From positions 124,001-188,000 of the IMG/VR virus record IMGVR_UViG_3300046787_000286: a stretch of 64,000 nucleotides of DNA. One strand, 5' to 3'. The notes below the pieces were generated by a model. It made no database searches. It saw only the letters and a program-made list of their open reading frames with translations, and had not been told where the DNA came from. The translations under genes were made by a program, and so were the position numbers. Numbering within the stretch: the first letter of the stretch is position 1; every line of letters starts with the position of its first letter. Shown here one piece after another: positions 5,281 to 63,546 of the stretch.

Positions 5281-6069
5281 TTAGCGACCTGTTTGTTGCC
5301 GAATTAGTGCTAATAGATCTTCGGGTATGTTTCGGGGAATTTCTGCTTGTAATCGAATCATCATGTCCCCGGGATTTCGGGATCGATCCGGTAAACCTCG
5401 CCCGCGACAACGAAGGATTTGACCTGGTTGTGTCATTGGCGGAATGGCAACGTTTAGTTCACGATTTAGGATATCCTTGACCATGATGTCACCACCTGCA
5501 ATCATGGTCCAAATATCAACCTTTTGGTCAGTGTACAGGTTGTACCCATCGCGTTGCCATTTTGGATTTGGGTGAATTCTAAATGTGACCACTAGATCTA
5601 CACCACCAGGTGCTAGCCCCGGGTACATTACCGACGCACCATCTTCTACGCCAGGCGGGATATCAATTTCTACAATTTGACTACCGGAATGACTGCCCAC
5701 ACTAACAGTTCGTTTTCCACCGGAAGCTACATCACTTAACTGAATCCATAAACTCATTCTAGCCTGGGCAGGCCGTCGTTGTTGGTTATGATTAAACTGT
5801 GCCCCAAACATGTTGAAGATGTTGTCAAAGTCAAATGGTTGCCCACCTGCTTGACGGAAACCAAATTGACCAAAGTCGGGACGCGGAGTATCGTGTGCTG
5901 CACGTTGCTCTGGGTCACTCAGTACACGATATGCTTCTTCAAGCTCTTGGAATTTGGCCGTGTCGCCGCCTTTGTCCGGATGAAATTTTGATGCCAGCCG
6001 TCTATACGCCTGCTTTATTTGTTCCGGAGTTGCAGACTTATCAACCCCAAGTGTTTCATAGTATTTCAT
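5281..6069 (-). CDS. dnaJ: DnaJ/CbpA-type J-domain chaperone lacking the zinc finger
   Basis: YYETLGV...HPDKGG J domain, G/F-rich linker, DnaJ C-terminal domain. Confidence 0.92.
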
Positions 6070-9574: not shown

Positions 9575-10561
9575 TTAACCGCGTTCTGGAAAATAGTCTA
9601 CAATACTACTTTGCCTGCGTATGTCTACTGTAATGCAGTGCATGCCGCCGTCCCAAAATCCACGACAACGGAATGGTACCCAATGCACTGTGATACCGCG
9701 TTCACTTAGTGTCTGCTCTAGTGCCCCATTATAGCCCAGCATCATTACAGTGGATTCGTTTATTACCAAACAGTTTAGTTCGAAGAATGTTTCTGTGTAA
9801 TCGCCTACCCAGTCTTGAGCATGCTTGATAACATGCTCGTTGAAACTGCGATTTAATTCAACGCCTTCTGCATAAAACTTACCATTGTATTCCCCGCCTA
9901 CAGGGGGTGTAGTTCTGTGATTCCAGTATGTGGATTCACTTAAAAAGATACATTCCCATCCTGGAAAATTACGTTCGTACCCATCATAGTAATGGTTAGC
10001 AATGATCAGTCCTGGCTTGAGAATAGCAAAGCAGCCGTCCATGTGGCCGCCATTCTTTTCCCAGGTGATTCTGTAGTCTTTAAAAAGATTTAAATTGAGC
10101 TCTGGTGCGTCAAATATATCAGTATCAATAACAATATCTTTGCCTAGTCGCACAACATTGGCGCCATTGATAACGTGATTTGCACCAGGTGCAGTTTGTT
10201 TGTTGTATAACGCTAACGTGCTACGCCACGCTGCGCCTGCGTTGTATGGCGTTAGTAATGTGTTGCCCACTGTTAGAAATGTATCTCTAGGACATATCTC
10301 AGGCTTAGTTAACACACCATTTGAGTCAACAAAATCATTTATGTTGAGGTATTCCGGACGGCGTACTGTGATACCAAATGATTCTAATTTGCTTTGTATT
10401 ACAGCCAGGTCCTGTTTTGTTATTTCAGTTATTTTATAAAATACATCACGCACAGCAGGATCTAAATGATCGTACCAGGAACTGGGGTATACATCTCCAA
10501 GCCAGACTTCTTCCAGTTGACTCCATGAATTGTGACTGTTAATCAATACAGGTCTTTCCAT
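9575..10561 (-). CDS. amidinotransferase (pentein fold; glycine/inosamine amidinotransferase-like)
   Basis: NSHNSWSQLEEVWLG, CPRD, HMDG, GGMHCITVDIRR motifs. Confidence 0.85.
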   Translation of the reverse strand: MERPVLINSHNSWSQLEEVWLGDVYPSSWYDHLDPAVRDVFYKITEITKQDLAVIQSKLESFGITVRRPEYLNINDFVDSNGVLTKPEICPRDTFLTVGNTLLTPYNAGAAWRSTLALYNKQTAPGANHVINGANVVRLGKDIVIDTDIFDAPELNLNLFKDYRITWEKNGGHMDGCFAILKPGLIIANHYYDGYERNFPGWECIFLSESTYWNHRTTPPVGGEYNGKFYAEGVELNRSFNEHVIKHAQDWVGDYTETFFELNCLVINESTVMMLGYNGALEQTLSERGITVHWVPFRCRGFWDGGMHCITVDIRRQSSIVDYFPERG

Positions 10562-11760
10562 TTATCTACTAGGTAGTTCTTTAGATCCACTGGGGTCTTT
10601 ATGTTGTTTTGGCGCATGAAGTTGTTGATCTTTGCAGCACTAGCGTAGTCTGCATTACCGGGCTTGCGGGCATTGCTTAGATCAACGCCTAACCCGTCGT
10701 CTTCATTTCTATAGCCCTGTCCGTACACTATAAGACTCTTTAGTTTGCGCTGAGCCGACGGAGTTAGTTCTGTCTTGGCTTTTTTATAGATCAATTCCAG
10801 CCAGTCTTCCAAATAGTTACGACTCGGACTAAATGATCTGCGAACCGGCTGCGCACCTTTTAGCAACTCGCCTGCTTGAGCTGGGCTAACTGCTTTTCTT
10901 TTATCCTGTAGTTTCCAAGCTGTTTCGTCTGTGTATAAGAACGCAGGAATACCTTGTTTCTTTGCTGATAGTAATACTGTGCGCACTTCTGGTGAACGAT
11001 TTTCCATTTGTTCTTTTAACAGCACATGAACTTCTCGAATGCTTTCTGCATTAGCAGGGATAGCAGGAGTTCGACTATACACACGGTCTTCTGCTTCTCT
11101 AGAACGTGTGCCATCTGAGTGCAGCCATGAACGATTCCAATAATCAATGGGCCTTGTTTTGTAGTTGTTGTTTAGCCAAGAGCCATTCAACACAAACATC
11201 GCAGCTGAACTGCCCACATAACGATTATGGTAGTCCCCTACTCGTGTTCTTGTGGTGCTTAGGAAATAAGGATAGCCAGGAATCTCATAGTCCTTTTCAG
11301 CTTGTGTTCCTGTAGAGCTTGCTAGTAGAAACTCTCCAGAAGTTAGGATACGTGCTGCTGCTGCGGTATTTGTATAGTGATACAAAATAGCCGACGCTGC
11401 TTCTGTTAATTGTTCTTCTTCCCACACACGTTCTTCACCGCGATGCTTGTCCCAGAAATTCGATCCAGCATCAGTTTGGTCAAAACTTCTGTTGATACGG
11501 TACCCGTGAGTTTTTACGAAATCATACATCACTCGAGCAACACCTTGCCCACGATACTGGTCTTTGATAAACAAATCTTGCGCTTCTAAATCATACATGT
11601 CAGTTACTTCGAAAGTAACATGGCCGATCTCTCTACGGCCAGATGGGTCATACACAGTTACAATGACTTCGTCATCGCCCTCGACTATTCTGAATCTAAG
11701 CCCACTAAACTCTTCAGTGGGTTGCTCTTTATATTCTACAATGAATTCTGCTGCTCTCAT
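10543..11760 (-). CDS. putative head-packaged protein: leader + GNAT acetyltransferase + ADP-ribosyltransferase-like domain
   Basis: Start MRAAEFIVE 5 nt after TAAATA; GNAT motif A YRGQGVA; linker EEQLTE; ART-like LYHYT...FLSTTR...EAEDRV. Confidence 0.7.
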   Translation of the reverse strand: MRAAEFIVEYKEQPTEEFSGLRFRIVEGDDEVIVTVYDPSGRREIGHVTFEVTDMYDLEAQDLFIKDQYRGQGVARVMYDFVKTHGYRINRSFDQTDAGSNFWDKHRGEERVWEEEQLTEAASAILYHYTNTAAAARILTSGEFLLASSTGTQAEKDYEIPGYPYFLSTTRTRVGDYHNRYVGSSAAMFVLNGSWLNNNYKTRPIDYWNRSWLHSDGTRSREAEDRVYSRTPAIPANAESIREVHVLLKEQMENRSPEVRTVLLSAKKQGIPAFLYTDETAWKLQDKRKAVSPAQAGELLKGAQPVRRSFSPSRNYLEDWLELIYKKAKTELTPSAQRKLKSLIVYGQGYRNEDDGLGVDLSNARKPGNADYASAAKINNFMRQNNIKTPVDLKNYLVDKWKDLY

Positions 11761-11768
11761 ATTAATAT

Positions 11769-12263
11769 TTAATTGCTTTGATAAGTTGCACCATAGCCAA
11801 CCCAAGCAGGTGCGGTGTATCCTTGGGGATATGCTTGAAGATGTTGTATAGTACGATGCCAACCTTCAATCAAGTCATACCCATTATTTAATTTAGCAAC
11901 AATAATAGGTTCTTCACTTACACCGGTTTGTTGAATCATTTTTAATTGCTGTGCGTGACGTTCTGCATCTTTTGGTACTTTATATGGATTAGCCAAACCG
12001 CCTTCGCGACTGTGAATCATTTGTTGTGTTTTGGGTGTAAAAATGTCTAGTGTGATAGGTAGCTTTTGTAAACGCCATTGTACTTGACCAAAGTCTTGTT
12101 TATTTCTTTTTAGAAAATCATCTAGTTCAGCTTGGCTTCTAATACCTTTTGCTTGTTGGTATAAAAAGTCTTTTAACACGTAATCAGGCCAGGTGGGAAA
12201 CTGTTGCTTGACATAAGCAAATAATGATCCCCTGGACTCTGTTAGGAATTCTTGTGCTCTCAT
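11769..12263 (-). CDS. putative head-packaged ParB/Srx-like domain protein
   Basis: Leader MRAQEFLTE; PIIV...YDLIEGWHR ParB-N motif. Confidence 0.7.
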   Translation of the reverse strand: MRAQEFLTESRGSLFAYVKQQFPTWPDYVLKDFLYQQAKGIRSQAELDDFLKRNKQDFGQVQWRLQKLPITLDIFTPKTQQMIHSREGGLANPYKVPKDAERHAQQLKMIQQTGVSEEPIIVAKLNNGYDLIEGWHRTIQHLQAYPQGYTAPAWVGYGATYQSN

Positions 12264-12264
12264 A

Positions 12265-12882
12265 TTACAACACCCAAGGATCGTTAATTACAGGCGTGCC
12301 ATTGGCTCGCATCATGATGTTGCCATCGTGCAAATCCCAGGCGTAGCCAGCACGGTCGCCTATAGCTTCAAGTTTCCGAGCAGTCTTTAAAAATTGTGTG
12401 ATACCCTCTACACCAAATTGCTTTATTAATTTGGCGTAGGTGTTGGGGTTTGTTTCTTGAACATGTCTAAGAGTAGTCTTTATTGAATCGTAGTCTATTA
12501 CGTCTGACACCATGCCCGATAACACAGTACCTACTGAACCTGAATCCTTTAGCGGCTCTGTGCGAATCATTAGATAGCGATGTTTTTCATCGTCGTCCCA
12601 GGGATGCCAAAAGAAACTTTCGTGTCCATAAAATCTTGGCAAGAACGGATTTGATTGATTCTTCTCGCAGAACTTGTACCATCTAAAGAACATTTTATGA
12701 TCTTGGCTGAACTGAGCTGTTTCGCCTGTGCCAAATATCTTTAAGACATGCCCTGTACCGGGTTCCATAAATGCAGTTTGGTCCACGCCTTGACCTAGGT
12801 ACTTGTAGCCTTTCTTTTTCAAGGCATTGATTACAGACTGGTCTGTTTCAGAATATTCGTCTAAAAATTCGTGAGATCTCAT
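12265..12882 (-). CDS. putative head-packaged protein-kinase-like enzyme
   Basis: Leader MRSHEFLDE; LGQG glycine loop, VLKIF, DLHDGNIM catalytic loop, INDP. Confidence 0.75.
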   Translation of the reverse strand: MRSHEFLDEYSETDQSVINALKKKGYKYLGQGVDQTAFMEPGTGHVLKIFGTGETAQFSQDHKMFFRWYKFCEKNQSNPFLPRFYGHESFFWHPWDDDEKHRYLMIRTEPLKDSGSVGTVLSGMVSDVIDYDSIKTTLRHVQETNPNTYAKLIKQFGVEGITQFLKTARKLEAIGDRAGYAWDLHDGNIMMRANGTPVINDPWVL

Positions 12883-13184
12883 TTCACACCTTCGAATATT
12901 CTTTTCTGTATCGCATACCATTCCTGCCACTGATCTACTTTTACAGCACATTCGTAATAGGTTGAATAGTTTGTAACTACTGTAGACGTTAGTCCACTTA
13001 GCTTCACGTCATTGGGGACGGTTTGTAGTTGTGGGCACTCACCTAGTCCTAGTCTAGGAGCATCAGGAAACTTTGCTGAGACAGGAACAGTTGTAGAACA
13101 ACCAGTAATAGCAAGTATTACCATGATAACTAGTGCAAAAATAATTACACTAGATACAATTTGTTGATCCTGTTGATTTTTCAT
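12879..13184 (-). CDS. lipoprotein, o-spanin (Rz1)-like
   Basis: Lipobox ITGC, Pro-rich periplasmic part with two further Cys; near i-spanin and endolysin. Confidence 0.65.
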   Translation of the reverse strand: MKNQQDQQIVSSVIIFALVIMVILAITGCSTTVPVSAKFPDAPRLGLGECPQLQTVPNDVKLSGLTSTVVTNYSTYYECAVKVDQWQEWYAIQKRIFEGVK

Positions 13185-13185
13185 A

Positions 13186-15126
13186 TTAGCAGTTCCAACG
13201 TCTACGTGCTTTACAAATTGCTTTGTCTGGAGTTTTAGCACATGAAATATTGTGCATGTTCATTTGACCTTTGGAGCGTGAGCAGTAGCTCTTTCTGCGT
13301 TTGCTTGCTTTAGAGCCCTTCTTTAGTTTAGAAGGCTTGGTAGTAACTGCTGTTTGCAGCTTTGATCCAGGATTTGCTCTGCGATATGCTTTTACAGCCT
13401 TGCGACTCATGCCGTCTGTTCTGTCACTCTTGTTGGCTTTTTGCCAGTCTTCGTTCAACTGAGAAGTCACGGCAAACACATACAGTTCATCGTGTGATAA
13501 AGATTCTAAATCTTCCCAAATCATTTCGGGATCTACGCCATTATGATCTGCAATTCGGTTAATAGAAGATTCAATTAAATCAAATTCTTCCGTTAATTCA
13601 GGATCTATACCTTGTGCTTTTTCGCTTTGTAGATAATCCCATACTGTCACAAGATAATCTTCAGCCAGGCTGATCTTTTCTTGACACCATTCAGGCAAGT
13701 TATCGCGATCGTCGATCACTTGTTGCAAGCCTTCTACAGCATTCTTTAGTGTGTGCAAGCTGCCGTGTGCCATGCCTGCTTCGTCATCGTACTCGGCATT
13801 GTAGTCTTCTGCTGCGCCTTGCTCTGTGATCCCACCGTCGCTGTCAAATCTTGGCTGAGTTCTTCCTGCCTGACCGCCTTGGGTCATATTACGCCCATTG
13901 CTTGGTATTCTTTTGGGTCCAATGGCTGGCGGCGATTTAAACGCACGGTTGCTTAGTTTAACAGTAGTACGACCTGGCACAGTGCGATCTATTGCAAGCC
14001 CAGTTTTTGGATCATGGGCAGCTCGCGCATAAAATGCAAGCTCGTCTCTAGTAAATCCGTCTTTTTCTTGGTGTGGCTCTGCTAGTGCCGCTAATTGATC
14101 TTTAATTCGTTGGCGTTCTGTGCTATTGTTAGTTGCGTGTAATTGCTTTTGCAACAGATGTCTCTGGTATATACGCTCATGCTCTTCATCATCGTCGTTT
14201 AAGCCTTCCGCCACACCTTCTTTAGTCTTTAAGCGTTTGAGAACAGCCATGTTCTCAGGCTTGCTCATGGTTTTCTTCAATGCGTCCAGCGCACGATCCT
14301 GTATGGCTTTGCTAGTCATCATACTATCTGGACCAATATGAATGTCTGGACCATTACTTGTATTGTGCTTGTCTCTTGACCCGTATGTGCTATGTCTCTT
14401 ACGATTGCTACCGTCACGTCCTGCACCGTCGCCGTCCATTTCTTTGATCTTATTGCCTTGTTGGTCAATGCCCGAGTTTGGTGGAAGATATACCTGCTTA
14501 CATGGCATGCATACTTGAACAGCATGTCCCTGGTACTTGCCACCTTGTAAGTCTCCGCCGCACTTGGGGCATGTGTGCATGTGGGAAATATCGCCGCGAT
14601 GCTTCTTTGGAAACTGTACAACTTCGCCTTCCTCTACAGATTCTTTTGGAACACAGTTATTAACTCGCACCCCACCCTTGACTTTGGTCTTGGGATTGCC
14701 AATTTTTTTGTTGTCCCAGCAAGCAGGATCCAAGCGAACTTTTTCTTCCGCTACACCTTGCTCAATGATGTCACCGCGAGCTTTAGCAACTTTAAACAAT
14801 GCAAACAAACTATCCCAGTCATGGGTGTTATTCATTTTGTCTTTGTATAGCTGTTGCTTTTCTGGTTTAATCTTAGCTAGGAACTTGTGCTTCATGCTGT
14901 GATTAGACGGAAATCCTGAGTAGTCATTGCCCAAATCTTTTACAGTGTAATCAAAGCCTTCGTCAATTGTTTTTAACTGACTGCGCAACTGATCTGCCAT
15001 TTTTAAATGATGATCACGTTTGATATCTTTGCTCTGCTTGGCAGCTTTTTCGTGAGCAGTAATTTGTGCCCATAATGCGTTTTGTTTACGCTGGTCTTTG
15101 TCTTCGTTGATTTCGTCGAATCTCAT
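13186..15126 (-). CDS. multi-module polyprotein-like putative internal head protein (646 aa)
   Basis: Start MRFDEINE; about 9 dissimilar modules separated by IDE, QGVAE, SVEE, IKE, EGVAE, QGAAE, LTE, LNE. Confidence 0.75.
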   Translation of the reverse strand: MRFDEINEDKDQRKQNALWAQITAHEKAAKQSKDIKRDHHLKMADQLRSQLKTIDEGFDYTVKDLGNDYSGFPSNHSMKHKFLAKIKPEKQQLYKDKMNNTHDWDSLFALFKVAKARGDIIEQGVAEEKVRLDPACWDNKKIGNPKTKVKGGVRVNNCVPKESVEEGEVVQFPKKHRGDISHMHTCPKCGGDLQGGKYQGHAVQVCMPCKQVYLPPNSGIDQQGNKIKEMDGDGAGRDGSNRKRHSTYGSRDKHNTSNGPDIHIGPDSMMTSKAIQDRALDALKKTMSKPENMAVLKRLKTKEGVAEGLNDDDEEHERIYQRHLLQKQLHATNNSTERQRIKDQLAALAEPHQEKDGFTRDELAFYARAAHDPKTGLAIDRTVPGRTTVKLSNRAFKSPPAIGPKRIPSNGRNMTQGGQAGRTQPRFDSDGGITEQGAAEDYNAEYDDEAGMAHGSLHTLKNAVEGLQQVIDDRDNLPEWCQEKISLAEDYLVTVWDYLQSEKAQGIDPELTEEFDLIESSINRIADHNGVDPEMIWEDLESLSHDELYVFAVTSQLNEDWQKANKSDRTDGMSRKAVKAYRRANPGSKLQTAVTTKPSKLKKGSKASKRRKSYCSRSKGQMNMHNISCAKTPDKAICKARRRWNC

Positions 15127-15584
15127 TTCAGTTCCTTGTTCTCTGCCGCAGCATTGTGTGCCTTTACTACTGCACCGGGTATAACACAACTGTTGTCATA
15201 TCGGGCAACTTCTCGATCCACATATTGTTTAATTATGACACCTTTTTCTCGGATAATCTTAATCTTTTCTTTTCCCTTAGCAGCCAGTTGTTCGTTAGCT
15301 GCTTGTGATTGTTGTTCAGCCAGTGCTACTCGAGCTTCCATTTCACGCACACGTTCACGCCAGGACATTTCTGAACTATATCCACCTTGGAAATAAACGC
15401 CCGATAAAAGAACTACTACAGATACTACCTGTGCAATCTTTATGTGCGGTGCCAGTGTGGGAATTAATCTGATCACATGCTTTAGTAAAAAGCAAGTTAA
15501 CACAGTGGCTAGTATACCTGCAATGAGAACTGCATCTACTACAAATGCTAGAAAAGAGTCAGGAAGTAGATGCAGAATAAACAT
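15123..15584 (-). CDS. i-spanin (Rz)-like inner membrane protein
   Basis: N-terminal TM helices, coiled coil, late Cys; directly downstream of endolysin. Confidence 0.65.
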   Translation of the reverse strand: MFILHLLPDSFLAFVVDAVLIAGILATVLTCFLLKHVIRLIPTLAPHIKIAQVVSVVVLLSGVYFQGGYSSEMSWRERVREMEARVALAEQQSQAANEQLAAKGKEKIKIIREKGVIIKQYVDREVARYDNSCVIPGAVVKAHNAAAENKELK

Positions 15585-15587
15585 TGA

Positions 15588-16202
15588 TTATGCTCCGAAT
15601 ACGTGTAAGGCGTGTTCGTAGTGCTTGATACGATCTTCTAAACCAATGTAGCCACCATTGATGACTTTGGTCATTGTTTTGATATCGCCTGCGTCGGCCC
15701 ACTTGTTTAGATTGTTTGTTTCCCAGAACCAGCAGCCTGATTGCACAGCGCCTTCAAATGTTCCCAGGTATTCACTTACTTCTTCCACGGCTGTTTCGAT
15801 AGAGTCAGCAAAGTTTTGATAGTTGTTTTTGCCTGTTAGCTGAATCAATCCACGTCCGCAGTAGCGATAGCCGTCACCTGACTCTTCGGGACCATTGCCC
15901 ATTCTATTGGCATACACTCTGTTAGCAATCTTTTCGCCTTTGTTGGCGTACTGTGCAGCCGTAGCATCGTCGGGGAAATACTTGGGGAATACTTTTCTTA
16001 AACTAGCTGCTTTGTAGTTTAGGTTTTCTTTCAAGAACACATAGTTGCCTGATTCGTGTGCAGTTTGTGCAATAAAAGCTGCCACACGCTGCGGTGTATC
16101 AATTTCGTATTCTGGAAGAATTTCGTTTAGGGCATGTACCCAGTAATCTAAGTAAGCGTTTTTGCCAATACAGCTTTGTAGTTGTTCTTTTGTGATGTTC
16201 AT
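15588..16202 (-). CDS. GH19 family endolysin
   Basis: AAFIAQTAHES, ENLNY, YCGRGLIQLTGKNNY, TKVINGGYIGLEDR. Confidence 0.92.
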   Translation of the reverse strand: MNITKEQLQSCIGKNAYLDYWVHALNEILPEYEIDTPQRVAAFIAQTAHESGNYVFLKENLNYKAASLRKVFPKYFPDDATAAQYANKGEKIANRVYANRMGNGPEESGDGYRYCGRGLIQLTGKNNYQNFADSIETAVEEVSEYLGTFEGAVQSGCWFWETNNLNKWADAGDIKTMTKVINGGYIGLEDRIKHYEHALHVFGA

Positions 16203-21965: not shown

Positions 21966-22595
21966 TTAGTGACCGTTGTTATGTAACCAGGCGCCTTTGT
22001 TAAAGCTGTTGCTCCAGCTTGCTGCATCTGCTCCGCCTTTGCGTTGGCTCCATTCGTAGCCTGCACGGTGTCCTGAACAGTCCTTGGTGCATTGCGAACC
22101 GCGGAATGTTAGTTCGTTTAATTGTGATTCATCTAGTTCATTGCCACTAAACGCAACAACATCATACGGGCCCCATGGATTGCCAGTGCGGCTGTCAATA
22201 TCATTACCAGCATCGTCGTAATCACTATATTCGTAATGATCATCGCTTTGAATCTCTACACCGTCAAAATTAGCATTGTAGCCAATGCTGTATTTGCGTA
22301 CTTTGCCGTCGCCACAATGAATACCACGCTCTAAGATGCGTTCTATATCTTCTTGGCTTTTGATGCCTGCATGTAGATCGCCTGTGTTAAATGTATCATT
22401 ATACCAAGCTGATGCTAGTGCTTTTAAATAGTTCCCGCCGGAACTGCTGCCACCTGGGGAAAATTCCGTTAAATCTTCATTCTTTTTGCGTCCAGCACAG
22501 TGAGCTTTTTGACTAAAGCCTTTGGGACTGGCACAATTGATAGAGCGCTTGTATTTTGCACTCCACTCTTCTGAAATGAATTCCGTTGCTCGCAT
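21966..22595 (-). CDS. three-module polyprotein-like putative internal head protein
   Basis: Leader MRATEFISE; junctions DLTE-FSPG and QLNE-LTFR. Confidence 0.7.
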   Translation of the reverse strand: MRATEFISEEWSAKYKRSINCASPKGFSQKAHCAGRKKNEDLTEFSPGGSSSGGNYLKALASAWYNDTFNTGDLHAGIKSQEDIERILERGIHCGDGKVRKYSIGYNANFDGVEIQSDDHYEYSDYDDAGNDIDSRTGNPWGPYDVVAFSGNELDESQLNELTFRGSQCTKDCSGHRAGYEWSQRKGGADAASWSNSFNKGAWLHNNGH

Positions 22596-36329: not shown

Positions 36330-36872
36330 TTACAGACGTTCGTTGCAAACGTCCCAGTTGATAATTTTCCAGATATTATCTAGGTACTTTTCTTTATCGC
36401 TTTGGTAGTCTAGCGCCCAGGCATGCTCCCACCAGTCTACTAGCACTGCAATATCTGTGCGAACTTGGTGATTTGGGATTGTTTTGATAGCACCACTAGT
36501 GCTCAAGTAGACCCACCCGGAACCTTGGATTTTCATTGCTTCTTCTTTGAACGCAATCTTGAAATCTTCGTAGGTTTTAAAGTGCTCTTCGATTAGCGTG
36601 AGTATTGCACCACGGGGTTTGTTTGCGCCCTTAGGAGCCCTAAGCTGAGGGAAGAACTTATTGTGTAAAAAACTGCCAGCACGATTAAAATTCGCATTAC
36701 CTTCTCCTGCGTTATAACGTTTTGCATAGCCCTTGGCTAGATGCTCATAGTGATAGTCAATTGTTTCTGCGCTCATTACAGGGTCAAGGTCTTTGACACC
36801 GTAGGGCAGGGGAGTGGTTTCCAGTTTTGCTGGACGGGTACTTGCTTCGATTAAGTCAATTTGTTCACGCAT
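36330..36872 (-). CDS. sod: Fe/Mn superoxide dismutase
   Basis: LPYGVKDLDP, HYEH, LHNKFF, QGSGWVYL, DWWEHAWALDY. Confidence 0.9.
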   Translation of the reverse strand: MREQIDLIEASTRPAKLETTPLPYGVKDLDPVMSAETIDYHYEHLAKGYAKRYNAGEGNANFNRAGSFLHNKFFPQLRAPKGANKPRGAILTLIEEHFKTYEDFKIAFKEEAMKIQGSGWVYLSTSGAIKTIPNHQVRTDIAVLVDWWEHAWALDYQSDKEKYLDNIWKIINWDVCNERL

Positions 36873-39237: not shown

Positions 39238-39747
39238 TTAGTCGTTGAACAGTTTCACTAGTTCTTGTGCTAGGGCGTTGTTGCCCAGCACAGGGCTGAG
39301 TGCGGAATGTTCGTCTCGGTACATGTTGTATAAACCCATTTTCTTTTCTGCTTTAGAAGCACTTGCATTCGAAAGACGGTCTGCTGACTTCACAAAGTCT
39401 GCACCCGGAGTACGAGCAATTTTTTCAATTACATTGGACATTTTTTCAGCACGGTCGCTGCCGTGTGCTGTTACAGCCCAAACCATGTCTGCTACATTAG
39501 TGCCGAACATTTTGCGGATGTCGTCAATTGTGACTTCCGGGCTGTCTTCTACTGTGTCGTGCAACCAGGCAGCGGCAATAATTTCAGGGTCGTCGGTGAT
39601 TTGCTTCACACGGCGCACCACATCTTCCAAGTGAACTGAGTATGGCTGCTCGCCATACTTTTGATCTTTGTGTGCGGCACGAGCAACAAGCTCGGCGCGA
39701 TGGACTAGACTGTTACCAATAGTTGCGTTTACTTCGTTAATTTTCAT
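39238..39747 (-). CDS. HD-domain hydrolase (SpoT/Mesh1-like small alarmone hydrolase)
   Basis: AHKDQ...PYSVHL, AAWLHDTVED, VKSADRLSN. Confidence 0.85.
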   Translation of the reverse strand: MKINEVNATIGNSLVHRAELVARAAHKDQKYGEQPYSVHLEDVVRRVKQITDDPEIIAAAWLHDTVEDSPEVTIDDIRKMFGTNVADMVWAVTAHGSDRAEKMSNVIEKIARTPGADFVKSADRLSNASASKAEKKMGLYNMYRDEHSALSPVLGNNALAQELVKLFND

Positions 39748-46405: not shown

Positions 46406-46513
46406 CGAACTCCTTTTGTTTCTGTATGTGTATATTATAGCAAATTGGGCAATTCTGGTCAACCAAAAAAATACCCTGCCAACTAGCAGGGTTTTGTAAC
46501 ACTTTGGGTTTAA
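46406..46513 (-). repeat. operator-terminator-promoter-RBS cassette, copy 1
   Basis: Near-identical to 49540-49601 and 49829-49917; TTGACC-N17-TATAAT at 46434-46462; ccctgc/gcaggg hairpin. Confidence 0.85.
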
Positions 46514-46881: not shown

Positions 46882-47051
46882 TTTAGACTCTCCAGTAATT
46901 GTTCGCCTGTCATGGGCTCGCTCCATTCATTGGCTTGATGGGTGCGAACTACCTTAACTAAATCTTCAGTTAGGTAGCCGGTGTTGTTTTCAGCATCAAT
47001 GCTTTCAAACAATGCTCGATCAGATGGTTGTTGGACTTCGTTAATACGCAT
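46878..47051 (-). CDS. 57-aa acidic protein, putative antitoxin with capsid-targeting-like leader (not in ORF track)
   Basis: MRINEVQQPSDRALFESIDAENNTGYLTEDLVKVVRTHQANEWSEPMTGEQLLESLK; TAAATA 4 nt upstream; GTGA overlap with the toxin gene. Confidence 0.7.
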   Translation of the reverse strand: MRINEVQQPSDRALFESIDAENNTGYLTEDLVKVVRTHQANEWSEPMTGEQLLESLK

Positions 47052-49539: not shown

Positions 49540-49601
49540 TCAAACTCCTTTTGTTTCTTTATGTGTATATTATAGCAAATCGGGCAATTTTGGTCAACCA
49601 A
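49540..49601 (-). repeat. promoter-RBS cassette, copy 2
   Basis: about 60 bp nearly identical to 46406-46467; TTGACC-N17-TATAAT at 49569-49597. Confidence 0.85.
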
Positions 49602-49830
49602 ATGCTTTAACTAATCCTGTGAGTCCAAGTCCCAAGGCCACAAGATTCACTGCCATTTGTGGTTTATTTGCAACACGAACAGTCCATGTCAGGAACAATA
49701 TTGTGCCTACAAAAAATGCAAGAATATTGTAAGGATAGGCTGCAGGTCCCACAGCGTTGAGACTGTGCCCTGCTATGATAAACACAGCACCGGCCCACTG
49801 TAAAATTTCGTTTGTATCTAATTTCTTCAT
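49594..49830 (-). CDS. small multi-TM membrane protein
   Basis: MKKLDTNE, ATG 6 nt after TATAAT. Confidence 0.7.
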   Translation of the reverse strand: MKKLDTNEILQWAGAVFIIAGHSLNAVGPAAYPYNILAFFVGTILFLTWTVRVANKPQMAVNLVALGLGLTGLVKAFG

Positions 49831-49917
49831 GTGTATATTATAGCAAATCGGGCAATTTTGGTCAACCAAAAAAATACCCCGCATTTCTGCAGGGTTAATG
49901 TAACACTTGAGTATTAC
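49829..49917 (-). repeat. operator-terminator-promoter cassette, copy 3
   Basis: promoter 49837-49865, hairpin 49876-49895, palindrome GTAACACT-TG-AGTATTAC at 49900-49917. Confidence 0.85.
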
Positions 49918-59541: not shown

Positions 59542-62500
59542 ATGGCAAACCAAATTAACATTGATATCGGTGCAGCAGCAAATGACGGCACAGGCGATCC
59601 GTTACGCACCGCGTTTAATTACGTAAACAACAACTTTTCTAACGTTTGGAATACAGGATTACCTAACTCAAACGTTCAATTTTCTGACAATAGAATTTTA
59701 ACAGTTAACACCAACGCTAACTTGGTGTTGGCACCTAATGGCATTGGCAAAGTTGCATCCAACGTTGATATTGTGCCTAACACAGCTAATGTATTTGCGC
59801 TAGGTGGGGCAAGTCGTCGTTGGAACACAGTTTACGGACAGTATTTAGATTTATCGCACAATGCAGTTATTGGCGGGAATTTAGTTGTTACAGGTAACTT
59901 ATCAGCAGGGAATATCAGTTACACATCTAATGTATTTGTTGGCGACCTAGAAGGATCAGTGTTCGACGGTGCTAGTTCGATTGTGTTGGATGTAATTGAC
60001 AGTACCATTTACGTAGACAACTATCGTTATGCAAATGGCGTTCCTGTTTCTTTTGGCGGCAATTATAGCAATGCAAACGTGGCAGCATATTTGCCAACTT
60101 ACACTGGCAATCTCAGTGCTAATAATATCACAGCTGGCAATGTGTTCACTGCACAGACAGTAACAGCAAATGATGCATACATTAACACTGGCACCTTTGC
60201 CGGGGATGAGAATACCGGAGACGCTGCAATGTACGTTGGATCGCCAACGTTTACTAACCTGGGCTCAGATATCATGGCCCAGTTTACAGGCAACGTAACA
60301 ACCTACGCTCAAATCAACTTGCAGAACTGGAGTAATGCTGCCACTGCATCCGGCGATTACATTTTAACAGCAGACAACGGCAACGACTCTACTCACTTCC
60401 TGGATATGGGTATAACCAGTTCTACCTGGGACGGTACACAAACAAACGTCTTAACCGGTCTCAATCCAAACAACGGTTACTTGTATGTACAAGATGGCAA
60501 CTTAACACTGGGCACAAGAGCAGGCAACGTAAGTTATAGCTGGAAGTTTGATACCACAGGCAACTTAACTGTGGCCGGAAACGTTATCCCCACAGGCAAC
60601 AACACACAGAGTTTAGGTAGTGCAACCCAGCAATGGAATGACTTGTATTTGTCCAATGCTACAATTTACATGAACTCTGTGCCGATCAGTTTGACTGCCG
60701 ACAATGTGCTCACAGTCAATGGTGCAGATGTTGTAACAACCAACAGTGAAGGACAGGCAAACATTGGTAACCTTGACATCAACGGCACTGTTATTCAAAT
60801 TGCAGAAGGTGCTTCAGAAACTCTAATCAATATTACTCCTAGTGGACCTACCGCAGGTTGGGCATATTTACAACTTCCCACAAATGGCACTGCAAATACA
60901 GCCAACACACGCTTGCATAACGATGCCGGCAATATAGAATTTGGTACAGGAGATTTTTCAACAGGTAGCACCAACTATACTTGGACATTTAACAACACCG
61001 GAACCTTGGTTTTTCCTGCCAACCCTAATGGTCAAATCTATGGTGGCCAAGACAACGATTTTATCATCACCACCTCCAATGCCAATGCTGCCACATACTA
61101 TTTTACTTTCAGTCAGTTAGGCGATCTCACAGTTCCTATCAATCTCAATGTGTCGGGCAATGTCTATACAAATGATATTGTAGGAGCAGGAGCTGGCAAC
61201 ATCACAATCACAGCTAACACACAGTCATGGTTATTTGATGACACTGGCATGTTGACTTTGCCCAGCGAGGGTCAGATTAGATCTGTGGCCAACACTGGCA
61301 TGAGACTCAGTGCTGGTGCCAGCGATGTCACTGGCTTGTTGTTAAACAACACTGGCGATGCTGAACTCTATGCTAATGCCAATGTATCCGTATACACTGA
61401 CTCTGGAAACACCGGCTGGACGTTTGACACTGCTGGTAATCTAACACTTCCTGGTAACGCTGGTGCAAACAATGCAAGCATTTCAGCAACAGTCAATGGT
61501 AGTATTCTAGGCCTAAACAGTCAGGCTAATGGTTCAGTAAGATTGAGAGCATATGGCAGTGCTGCCAACCTGGTTGCTGGCATGGCTGTGTTTGGTGAAG
61601 ACGGTGAAGTTGATCGTGTTCAAATCAGCACTTATAACCCTGGCATTGATGATAACAACGCTTGGGTATTTAACACTAGTGGCGATTTAACCACGCCAGA
61701 TGGTAACATATTCTTTGGCACAGGCGCTAATAGTGCTGTTATTGTGCCAGCAGGTAATTCTGTTAAAATAGCCGCAGATCGCGGAAATACTTCAAAAAAT
61801 TATATTGATATAACCAGCAGTGGAATAACCATTGATGCACTAGGTGGTTCCACTGCTGACATTAGAATAAGAGCCGCAGATGATATTTTTGTGCAAGGCG
61901 GGGACAAAACAAGTGCTCCGGGACAACGCGGTGGTGATATCAATATTGATGGTGGCCAAGGTGGCCCAGACAATGGTGTCAATGCAGGCGACGGCGGCGA
62001 CATTGCCATTCAAGGTGGCCTGGGCGGCGAGATATTAGCAGGTGGATCAGGCGACGGCGGCGATGTGACACTGCTTGGTGGTACAGGTAGCACCGCCAAC
62101 GTTGCTAATTTACTAGGGGCAGGCCGCGGCGGCCTGGTGGTGATACAAGGTGGTCAAGGTGGCGATCAAGCAGGCAACACTTCTCTATCAGAGCGCGGCG
62201 GCAACGTTGACATCTACGGCGGCCAAGGCAGTTTTGACTTTGCGAACACTTTGCCAAGTGGTCTTCCAGGCCATGTTAACCTCTATGGTGGCAACTGGGG
62301 ATTTGTCAATGCTCCAAGTGGCAACATCTATCTCAATACCTATGACGGAACAAACTTCAAGACATTGACCTACGATACTGCTGGCAATGTCACAATGGCC
62401 GCTGGTGGTGCATTAAACATGGTGGGATCAAGTTCGGGCATTGTTCAATCGCCAAACAATGATTTGATTGTCACAGTTCAAGATGATGACAATGACGATT

Positions 62501-63546
62501 GGGCATTATACAATCGAATCACTGACACTGGCGCAACATTGGGCGAAACAAGACTACGCCGTGGCGATTTTCGAATTGATTTTCCTGGTGTGTCAAAGAC
62601 CTTTACCTTTGATGATAGTGGTGTACTTAGTTTACCCGGTGATATTGCTTCTAGCACTCAAGGCGGAGATATCAGTCTTTATGCAATCGACGATGGCGAC
62701 AGTGGATCTGCAGAGATAAAAACTATCAGTTTTGCTGGTAGTACGCTAGGTAGTAATGTCAGAGTAACCCAAAGCAACGCCACTATTTCGACCAGTAACG
62801 CTGCATACACCTGGACATTTGATAACACTGGTAATCTAACAGTTCCAGGAAACACCATTGTTTCCACAGCCAATGCCACAGGCGGTCTAGGTGGTAAGAG
62901 CGTAAGCATTACTGCTGGCGCCAGTGACGCAGTTACTTGGAATTCAAACCCAGGTGGCAATGTAAACATCACAGGCGGATACGGCTCGTTTGGCGGCGGC
63001 GGCGGCGGTCCTGGTGGTAATGTTAATATCACAAGTGGTGGTAGTTCAGATAGCCATGCAGGCAATGTAACTATCAATTCCGGCGCTAATGCATGGAACT
63101 TTGATTACACCGGTAATTTAGACGCCCCGGGTAATATTACATCCACTAACTTTGTCGGCAACGGCGCAGCATTGACCAATGTTGCTACACAAGTAACAGG
63201 TTCCTGGACATTAGCCGCAGGGACAAACACTGCAAATATTACAGTTCCGCCAAACGGTACTTACACAATCTGGGTCAATGGAAACATTCCAAACGGTATT
63301 GCAGTATGGAACGCTACTGTAACTATTACCAACAATAACGTGCCAGTAATTGGACAACAATTTGCTTGGAATTATTCTGGTAATGCGTTGGTGATTACTT
63401 CAATTCCATCACAGATCATTGGAACAGCAGGTGCTATTAGTAATGCATCACCGGCTGTTGGCACAACTACCAATGTGTTTGAGTTCAGCATTGACAACAA
63501 CAGTGGTAATAGTCAGACTGTGGACTACGGATGGACTAAACTTTAA
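59542..63546 (+). CDS. long tail fibre / receptor-binding protein
   Basis: 1334 aa, G/N/T-rich; anchor GAAANDGTGDPLRTAF; about 10 W/FxFDxxGxLTxP repeats; GGxVxIxGG repeats; TAAATA upstream. Confidence 0.85.
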   Translation: MANQINIDIGAAANDGTGDPLRTAFNYVNNNFSNVWNTGLPNSNVQFSDNRILTVNTNANLVLAPNGIGKVASNVDIVPNTANVFALGGASRRWNTVYGQYLDLSHNAVIGGNLVVTGNLSAGNISYTSNVFVGDLEGSVFDGASSIVLDVIDSTIYVDNYRYANGVPVSFGGNYSNANVAAYLPTYTGNLSANNITAGNVFTAQTVTANDAYINTGTFAGDENTGDAAMYVGSPTFTNLGSDIMAQFTGNVTTYAQINLQNWSNAATASGDYILTADNGNDSTHFLDMGITSSTWDGTQTNVLTGLNPNNGYLYVQDGNLTLGTRAGNVSYSWKFDTTGNLTVAGNVIPTGNNTQSLGSATQQWNDLYLSNATIYMNSVPISLTADNVLTVNGADVVTTNSEGQANIGNLDINGTVIQIAEGASETLINITPSGPTAGWAYLQLPTNGTANTANTRLHNDAGNIEFGTGDFSTGSTNYTWTFNNTGTLVFPANPNGQIYGGQDNDFIITTSNANAATYYFTFSQLGDLTVPINLNVSGNVYTNDIVGAGAGNITITANTQSWLFDDTGMLTLPSEGQIRSVANTGMRLSAGASDVTGLLLNNTGDAELYANANVSVYTDSGNTGWTFDTAGNLTLPGNAGANNASISATVNGSILGLNSQANGSVRLRAYGSAANLVAGMAVFGEDGEVDRVQISTYNPGIDDNNAWVFNTSGDLTTPDGNIFFGTGANSAVIVPAGNSVKIAADRGNTSKNYIDITSSGITIDALGGSTADIRIRAADDIFVQGGDKTSAPGQRGGDINIDGGQGGPDNGVNAGDGGDIAIQGGLGGEILAGGSGDGGDVTLLGGTGSTANVANLLGAGRGGLVVIQGGQGGDQAGNTSLSERGGNVDIYGGQGSFDFANTLPSGLPGHVNLYGGNWGFVNAPSGNIYLNTYDGTNFKTLTYDTAGNVTMAAGGALNMVGSSSGIVQSPNNDLIVTVQDDDNDDWALYNRITDTGATLGETRLRRGDFRIDFPGVSKTFTFDDSGVLSLPGDIASSTQGGDISLYAIDDGDSGSAEIKTISFAGSTLGSNVRVTQSNATISTSNAAYTWTFDNTGNLTVPGNTIVSTANATGGLGGKSVSITAGASDAVTWNSNPGGNVNITGGYGSFGGGGGGPGGNVNITSGGSSDSHAGNVTINSGANAWNFDYTGNLDAPGNITSTNFVGNGAALTNVATQVTGSWTLAAGTNTANITVPPNGTYTIWVNGNIPNGIAVWNATVTITNNNVPVIGQQFAWNYSGNALVITSIPSQIIGTAGAISNASPAVGTTTNVFEFSIDNNSGNSQTVDYGWTKL

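Follow-up and report, generated by a model that had tools for sequence, protein, structure and literature searches.

A putative capsid-targeting leader resembling that of phage T4 on predicted host-modifying enzymes of an uncultivated huge phage

In phage T4, a capsid-targeting sequence (CTS) of about 10 residues, which is cut by the prohead protease gp21, suffices to package foreign proteins into the head. The N-terminal part of the CTS is responsible for targeting, while residues 8 and 10 direct the processing; a change of the E9D type prevents cleavage in T4 and leaves targeting intact. The internal proteins IPII and IPIII both start with MKTYQEFIAE↓A (the arrow here and below denotes a known or predicted cut) and gp24 starts with MAKINELLRE; the genes ipIII and ipII follow immediately after the endolysin gene e, and nudE is located upstream. 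Here, we describe a nine-residue N-terminal leader of similar format in a stretch of 64,000 nucleotides, hereafter the window, which corresponds to positions 124,001-188,000 of the 214-kb viral contig IMGVR_UViG_3300046787_000286 (Joint Genome Institute, JGI, Ga0485269_000016). The leader opens genes for predicted enzymes and basic proteins that may be packaged in the phage head.

Proteins that enter the cell with the DNA are known for few cultured phages, since their identification needs virion proteomics. In phiKZ, 201phi2-1 and SPN3US, the propeptides of ejection and inner-body proteins are mostly >100 residues in size and are cut at Ala/Ser/Gly-x-Glu by a protease related to gp21. In phage P1, the first 30 residues of DarB suffice to direct the anti-restriction enzyme as well as reporters into the head. 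Polyvalent proteins have been predicted to be delivered with the DNA, and self-processing by a zincin-like metallopeptidase domain has been proposed for them (Iyer et al. 2017, PMC5512222). The nearest cultured relative of the phage studied here is the Pseudomonas jumbo phage PA5oct, with 53% identity in the clamp loader, and a megablast search of the region against cultured phages gave no nucleotide match. The contig is probably an incomplete fragment, since related contigs reach 340-364 kb. Literature searches for the sequence strings, within the papers available to us, found no relevant description of the leader or of the GVAE linker described below.

The strict form of the leader, M-R-x-x-E-F-[I/L]-x-E, opens four unrelated genes in the window. 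A first-pass annotation had placed MRAAEFIVE at 11760, MRAQEFLTE at 12263, MRSHEFLDE at 12882 and MRATEFISE at 22595 after correction of the gene starts, and all four positions were exact and on the minus strand, which carries nearly all genes of the window. The JGI gene calls agree with the corrected starts for both of the genes that they cover, 11760 (405 aa) and 12263 (164 aa, truncated at the end of the locus). Among 126 open reading frame (ORF) starts, the pattern M[RK]xxEF[ILV]xE was observed 4 times as compared to 0.0005 expected. The looser forms MRFDEINE (15126), MREQIDLIE (36872) and MRINEV (47051) were also located on the minus strand as previously indicated, while the many mini-proteins listed as further cargo found no support within the window. 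The proposed genome-wide scan for the leader was run over 157 kb of the contig and yielded one extra strict case, MRANEFVVE on a 156-aa protein whose gene lies just outside the left end of the window, as well as a partial one, MRAHEFTDQ on a 344-aa NUDIX protein with a basic, Cys-containing tail, the two genes being arranged back to back. This gene pair comes after a 1652-aa protein with a weak amidoligase match. All strict tags identified in the scan are confined to 29 kb around the lysis genes.

We also examined 79 related loci anchored on the endolysin. In these, many ORFs that are unrelated to each other begin with the leader, which is found on the coding strand and at ORF starts in every case and heads at least 15 unrelated families. 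Long ORFs of the window and the 79 loci contained 83 copies of the core EF[ILVF]x[ED], and M[RK] was placed exactly at positions -4/-3 of the core in 23 of these, as compared to about 0.2 expected. A logo of 194 examples showed I, L or V at position 7 in 188 and E at position 9 in 190. The tagged proteins of the relatives include a second GH19 lysozyme-like enzyme, a DUF6267 protein, a cytidylyltransferase-like protein and many small basic proteins with isoelectric points (pI) of 9-11, as for the T4 internal proteins.

At A3, E5, F6 and E9, the choice among synonymous codons follows genome-wide usage, and the codons at positions 7 and 8 differ while the chemical class of the residue is kept, which argues that selection on the leader acts at the peptide level. 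The only biased codon is codon 2, for which 28 of 30 leaders use AGA or AAA (AGA represents 21% of Arg codons), and the DNA upstream of the tagged genes is unrelated between the genes. The Glu-Phe pair is encoded as GAATTC, an EcoRI site, in three of the four strict leaders (11743-11748, 12246-12251 and 22578-22583), probably a trivial effect of codon choice.

The coordinates of the tagged genes, here called A to E, and of their neighbours are listed in Table 1. The first-pass annotation had named a GNAT acetyltransferase, an ADP-ribosyltransferase (ART), a kinase, a ParB-like protein and a superoxide dismutase (SOD) as cargo, and these domain assignments hold, the ADP-ribosyltransferase as a probable, DarT-like ART fold. 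The N-terminal domain of A has a weak Pfam match to GNAT, and Foldseek searches with it retrieved GNATs. Searches with the C-terminal domain retrieved DarT ADP-ribosyltransferases with a weak E-value (2.6e-3) and template modelling (TM) scores of 0.44-0.48; there was no Pfam ART match for A, and the alignment revealed invariant residues of catalytic type (His128, Ser168..Arg171 and Glu222/Glu224). The AlphaFold model of A has a predicted local distance difference test (pLDDT) score of 77.6, with values <50 for residues 1-11 and 91-120, such that the tag and the linker are modelled as disordered.

Table 1. Location of tagged genes, predicted processing sites and other features. Coordinates refer to the window unless a contig or locus (L) position is given.
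Feature	Coordinates	Strand	Remarks
Protein A, 405 aa	10543..11760	-	Leader, GNAT-like half-domain (residues 12-90), linker (91-120), ART fold plus helical tail (121-405)
Leader of A, MRAAEFIVE	11734..11760	-	Predicted cut after Glu9
Internal junction of A, EEEQLTE↓AASA (Glu120)	11401..11421	-	Predicted second cut, between GNAT and ART-like modules
Protein B, 164 aa	11769..12263	-	Leader MRAQEFLTE (12237-12263) plus ParB/Srx-fold domain
Protein C, 205 aa	12265..12882	-	Leader MRSHEFLDE (12856-12882) plus T7 gp0.7-like protein kinase domain
o-spanin-like lipoprotein gene	12879..13184	-	phrog_456; lipobox LAITGC
Protein D, 646 aa	13186..15126	-	Loose leader MRFDEINE (15103-15126); modular, basic; C-terminal DUF6321 (13195-13425)
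GVAE linker 1 of D, EQGVAEE (residues 124-127)	14746..14757	-	Predicted internal cut site
GVAE linker 2 of D, KEGVAEG (residues 304-307)	14206..14217	-	Predicted internal cut site
Third, weaker site in D, EQGAAED	13807-13818	-
i-spanin-like gene	15123..15584	-	Rz-like spanin PHROGs
Endolysin, GH19 type	15588..16202	-	phrog_181, E 5e-75; first gene of the string that holds the tagged genes
Protein E, 209 aa	21966..22595	-	Leader MRATEFISE (22569-22595) plus basic Cys-containing module
Fe/Mn superoxide dismutase	36330..36872	-	15-residue N-terminal extension (36828-36872) ending in ..DLIE↓AST
ClpA-like double-AAA ATPase, 747 aa	2988-5231	-	Adjoins DnaJ
DnaJ	5281-6069	-
Two ClpP homologues	contig ~107.5 kb and ~198.6-199.1 kb (L208:18072-18668, L222:7915-8424)
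MRANEFVVE gene and MRAHEFTDQ NUDIX gene	contig ~116.2-117.7 kb (L208:9534-11035)		Left of the window
Cyanophage protein with E- and D-like ends	L380:2795-4624		Synechococcus phage S-SRM01 gp206

The leader is present at the start of 99 of 120 homologues of A. Most of these are standalone proteins of 294 aa in which the C-terminal domain follows immediately after the leader (MRAQEFLTE↓AASAxVYHYT). In the GNAT fusions of 405 aa, to which A of the window belongs, the ART-like domain is instead preceded internally by ..EEEQLTE↓AASA. All of 40 aligned homologues have Glu120 of A, which in the standalone proteins is residue 9 of the leader. Some homologues carry two successive units (MRAxEFITE-xx[IL]xE↓), and variant leaders in this family include MFVHDLFE and MKINEVLLE.

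For protein B, the model has a pLDDT of 89.4 and all top Foldseek matches (sulfiredoxin (Srx), ParB, Noc and PadC) have a ParB/Srx fold, with a best E-value of 1.1e-2 (none <0.001) and TM scores of up to 0.63. Residues E133, G134, H136 and R137 are invariant and represent the G-x-H/R-R pocket of the ParB/Srx fold. A tblastn search with B against cultured phages gave no match, and sequence searches of the PDB with B and C gave nothing. The B domain occurs in 387 proteins, of which 150 listed cluster representatives span 123-1852 aa, and the leader is present at the start of 72 of the 150. Eighty internal copies of the domain are preceded by a linker of the form (Q)GVAEG..hydrophobic-x-E↓. Protein C matches phrog_15752 (E 8.6e-10), a T7 gp0.7-like kinase, and 54 of its 78 homologues start with the leader. 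In this family, one to three hydrophobic-x-E units are arranged in tandem, in many members two or three, and the domain, which begins with [YFW]S, always follows immediately after the last unit. The relatives also encode fusions of an ART-PolyVal domain to a kinase and of a nucleotidyltransferase to a kinase.

The Pfam domains of the SOD start at residue 20, downstream of the N-terminal extension. The 120 closest homologues listed all have an extension of variable length, in which [IL]-[DN]-L-[IVL]-E↓AST precedes the canonical start, and the loose leader MREQIDLIE is therefore plausible.

Protein D matches the Pfam family DUF6321 and phrog_727, has a Zn-ribbon-like segment and contains two GVAE linkers. 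The motif G[VIL]AE occurs only 3 times in 46,000 aa of the contig, and 2 of these copies are located in D. In the multi-domain proteins of the B family it is enriched about 30-fold and located at domain junctions. The C-terminal module of D shares 64-68% identity with proteins of T4-like cyanophages, and residues 1-41 of E match small basic proteins that are encoded between the terminase genes of such phages. Both modules meet in a 609-aa T4-like cyanophage protein encoded between the genes for the small and the large terminase subunits, with an E-like N-terminal module and a D-like C-terminal module (DUF6321), and a related cyanophage protein starts with MKTLKQFLKE. This suggests, from sequence similarity, that the E and D modules belong to an old set of basic, head-associated modules that very different T4-related lineages have in common.

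What is new here, as judged from the alignments, is the hydrophobic-x-Glu junction, which is invariant directly before each putative mature domain, also inside fusion proteins. Since it is kept at every domain boundary, the junction looks as a Glu-specific processing site would. The pattern fits tagged cargo and polyproteins that would be cut after Glu by a prohead protease of the T4 type, in which case the conserved junctions predict the exact mature N-termini. No peptidase family, including the zincin-like metallopeptidases, was identified in a Pfam scan of A to E and their fusion relatives; one weak metallopeptidase-like match was obtained for a single-domain tagged protein of a relative.

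The same format is found inside the head gene cluster of PA5oct. The head genes of this phage are arranged in the T4 order (portal, small protein, acidic protein, protease, scaffold and capsid), with a protease that has 38% identity to T4 gp21. A 73-aa protein encoded between the portal and protease genes starts with MKINDIITE and has, according to the annotation of the record, been detected in virions by mass spectrometry. Analogues of this protein, encoded in 99 metagenomic head modules, start with MRAAELLVEF, MRATELLVEY, MKAKDLLVEF, MRSDEFLKEN, MILRELFYFD or MFIAELFEP, which may be compared with the start of A in the window, MRAAEFIVEY.

The location of the tagged genes also resembles that in T4. 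They come after the endolysin and spanin genes in a gene string so compact that, all the way from 16202 to 9575, each stop codon overlaps or almost touches the next start codon. Among the relatives, the part that follows the endolysin is highly variable, with evident domain shuffling. The two spanin-like genes are separated from each other by the tagged gene D (13186-15126), and the stop and start codons overlap or abut here as well.

Promoter motifs provide an indication of the timing. A perfect TTGACC-N17-TATAAT motif occurs 8 times in the window, all at 38.8-59.1 kb, as compared to 0.04 expected, and is often paired with a terminator. The promoters, of the form TTGACC-N17-(TGC)TATAAT, are located at 38809-59096 on the minus strand, and three of them are carried by repeated cassettes of about 75 nt (46419-46493, 49554-49628 and 49822-49896), two of which begin with a GC hairpin and T-run terminator. 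Judged by sequence, these look like early promoters for the host RNA polymerase, and the segment at 38.8-59.1 kb like an early region. There are 22 such sigma70-type promoters on the contig, and none at contig positions 93,739-162,837 where all strict tags are located. The gene at 47051, whose MRINEV start had been taken as a loose leader, begins with MRINEVQQP, and another loose form, MKINEVNAT, opens the gene at 39747. We do not count these two as cargo because they belong to early-promoter units and do not have a hydrophobic-x-E end. Late control had been read from a TAAATA box in front of three of the genes. The hexamer is indeed present 10-11 nt before these three starts, but its TAA terminates the preceding gene, and the hexamer occurs 27 times on that strand as compared to 28 expected; we therefore rejected it as a late box since its frequency is that of chance. 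The late box of T4, TATAAATA, is absent from the window.

In a comparison with the known systems, the tag shares with the T4 CTS its position at the N-terminus of unrelated proteins, its short size, the basic residue 2, the E-F-[I/L]-x-E core and the predicted cut after Glu, with Ala or Ser as the next residue. Likewise, the predicted cargo includes basic proteins and a putative ADP-ribosyltransferase, as for the T4 internal proteins, and is encoded next to the endolysin gene. Unlike the CTS, which has ten residues, the tag has nine and is found in a huge phage lineage related to PA5oct rather than in the Straboviridae. The predicted cargo is also much wider than in T4, with a kinase, GNAT, ParB/Srx, nucleotidyltransferase, GH19, NUDIX-like and SOD proteins, and the fusion proteins and polyproteins keep predicted internal cut sites as well as a dedicated GVAE linker. 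As in phiKZ, 201phi2-1 and SPN3US, where head-internal proteins are processed after Glu, paralogues share conserved N-termini and propeptides have multiple cut sites, which are predicted ones in the present case; unlike the long Ala/Ser/Gly-x-Glu propeptides of those phages, the tag is 9-19 residues in size with a hydrophobic P3 as in T4. The repertoire of domains (ART-PolyVal, ParB, Pol-beta nucleotidyltransferase, GNAT and lysozyme) is the same as in the polyvalent proteins and also occurs in variable order, and several effector-type domains may be combined in one polypeptide, as in A with its GNAT-like domain and ART fold, in the fusion relatives and in B-domain proteins of up to 1852 aa. 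The proteins of the window differ from polyvalent proteins in that they are mostly single-domain and have a leader and Glu-ended linkers instead of a metallopeptidase domain. A proposed N-terminal signal for loading into the head is shared with DarB of P1, to which there is no evident sequence likeness, and P1 is without a separate scaffolding core of the T4 type.

We estimate the probability that M-[R/K]-[A/I]-x-E-[F/I/L]-[I/L/V]-x-E represents a T4-type capsid-targeting propeptide that feeds processing by a prohead protease to be roughly 0.65. The first-pass proposal of a T4-like capsid-targeting leader on host-modifying enzymes is strengthened by the conservation across architectures, the invariant Glu at the junction, the match to the T4 CTS and to the PA5oct head protein, and the adjacency to the endolysin, and is weakened by the lack of a protease gene in 176 kb of the contig. 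According to this model, the tagged proteins would bind via the tag to the scaffolding core of the assembling prohead late in infection. A prohead protease of the T4 gp21 family would then cut after Glu of hydrophobic-x-Glu to remove the tag, and would cut fusion proteins and polyproteins at the kept junctions (..LTE↓AASA in A and the GVAE linkers in D). The mature modules would stay in the head and enter the next cell along with the DNA, thereby delivering the GNAT, DarT-like ADP-ribosyltransferase, ParB/Srx and gp0.7-like kinase modules, basic DNA-associated modules and probably the SOD. Core binding, prohead-protease cleavage, virion retention, injection and action in the host are steps that we infer. 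The best available reading is that a known mechanism, the CTS and gp21 of T4, has been varied in a new, very large phage lineage by a wider range of cargo and a polyprotein twist.

Several observations weigh against this interpretation. We walked along the contig by exact-protein look-ups and one viral scan and did not find portal, protease or major capsid genes at positions 31,225-206,992 of 214,006 (176 kb), where the types of genes met were only those for replication, nucleotide and sugar metabolism, Clp, lysis and small early functions. Local tblastn searches with the portal, protease and capsid proteins of PA5oct were negative on the loci walked by then. None of the 200 head-module loci obtained in three scans was located on a contig that was also present in the endolysin or 110-aa-protein lists, and the flanks of the head loci were without accessory tagged genes. 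In the first 110 kb of PA5oct, the tag format is present only on the head-module protein. Furthermore, hydrophobic-x-Glu is short and frequent by chance inside proteins, the tag is continuous with helix 1 in the model of B and thus not free, early expression in the cytoplasm would equally suit kinase and ART functions, and the tag-bearing cargo is known from gene sequences and not from virions. A generic scan for sigma70 promoters and terminators at 9-23.5 kb was at chance level, and the transcription timing of the tagged genes is deduced from position only. As the 176 kb yielded no protease gene, we infer its presence in the lineage from the PA5oct-like relatives, which encode both a prohead protease of the gp21 family and a scaffold and whose head modules are located on other contigs.

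An alternative that we consider unlikely is that the Glu-ended motifs are processing sites only, cut in the cytoplasm by a Glu-specific protease to release products that are not packaged and whose action is confined to the cell in which they are made. What the GVAE linkers and the invariance of Glu at the junction show is a constraint on the junction and not the place of the cut, and the contig part examined provided no head genes, both of which agree with this alternative. It does not explain why all nine residues are conserved, including M, the basic residue, A, E5 and F6 rather than the last three alone, why the same format is present on a virion protein encoded inside a head gene cluster, or why the tag matches the T4 CTS, of which the N-terminal part targets.

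Another explanation, to which we assign a very low probability, is that the tag serves as an N-terminal degron or adaptor signal for a phage Clp machinery that times the destruction or unfolding of the enzymes. The phage encodes a ClpA-like double-AAA ATPase, DnaJ and two ClpP homologues, possibly a complete phage-borne Clp protease and chaperone set, but a degron would not need to be maintained at internal domain junctions or in tandem hydrophobic-x-E units, and the same format occurs on a stable virion protein of PA5oct. No known Clp recognition motif was matched to the tag, none having been tested. Finally, it is hardly credible that the shared start is a nucleic-acid feature, such as a translation-initiation context or a recombination site for cassette exchange, with the peptide as a by-product, since the bias at codon 2 and the shuffled, highly variable region after the endolysin are outweighed by the free synonymous variation at A3, E5, F6 and E9, the retention of only the chemical class at positions 7 and 8, the unrelated upstream DNA and the internal junctions that keep the peptide motif without a start codon.

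If the capsid-targeting interpretation is correct and the tag works like the T4 CTS, candidate injected effectors can be listed from sequence in hundreds of uncultivated huge freshwater phages. These candidates would include kinases, ADP-ribosyltransferases, acetyltransferases, ParB-type nucleases and lysozymes. Under the same condition, the tag would offer a specific alternative to self-processing as proposed for polyvalent proteins, and a second natural signal for loading foreign proteins into capsids. More tentatively, and with some doubt on our side, uncultivated huge phages of a very large clade may use a simple two-part code, in which a nine-residue address tag and Glu-ended linkers (hydrophobic-x-E and GVAE) bring single enzymes as well as long polyproteins into the prohead, where the prohead protease would split them into separate effectors, replacing self-processing by a metallopeptidase in this clade. 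The injected proteins, an antioxidant enzyme among them, could then be read from sequence.

Two further features of the contig are outside the tagged genes. A lone ORF of 1334 aa (59542-63546, plus strand) is located amid early-type genes on the minus strand and has no PHROG match and no Pfam hit on record in the JGI gene listing. Further to the left, a stretch of about 7 kb at contig positions ~68.9-75.9 kb (L212:14000-21000) contains very few called genes and adjoins genes for small proteins similar to SutA, RF-1 and the RNA polymerase subunit Rpb6; it could hold genes for tRNAs or other RNAs.

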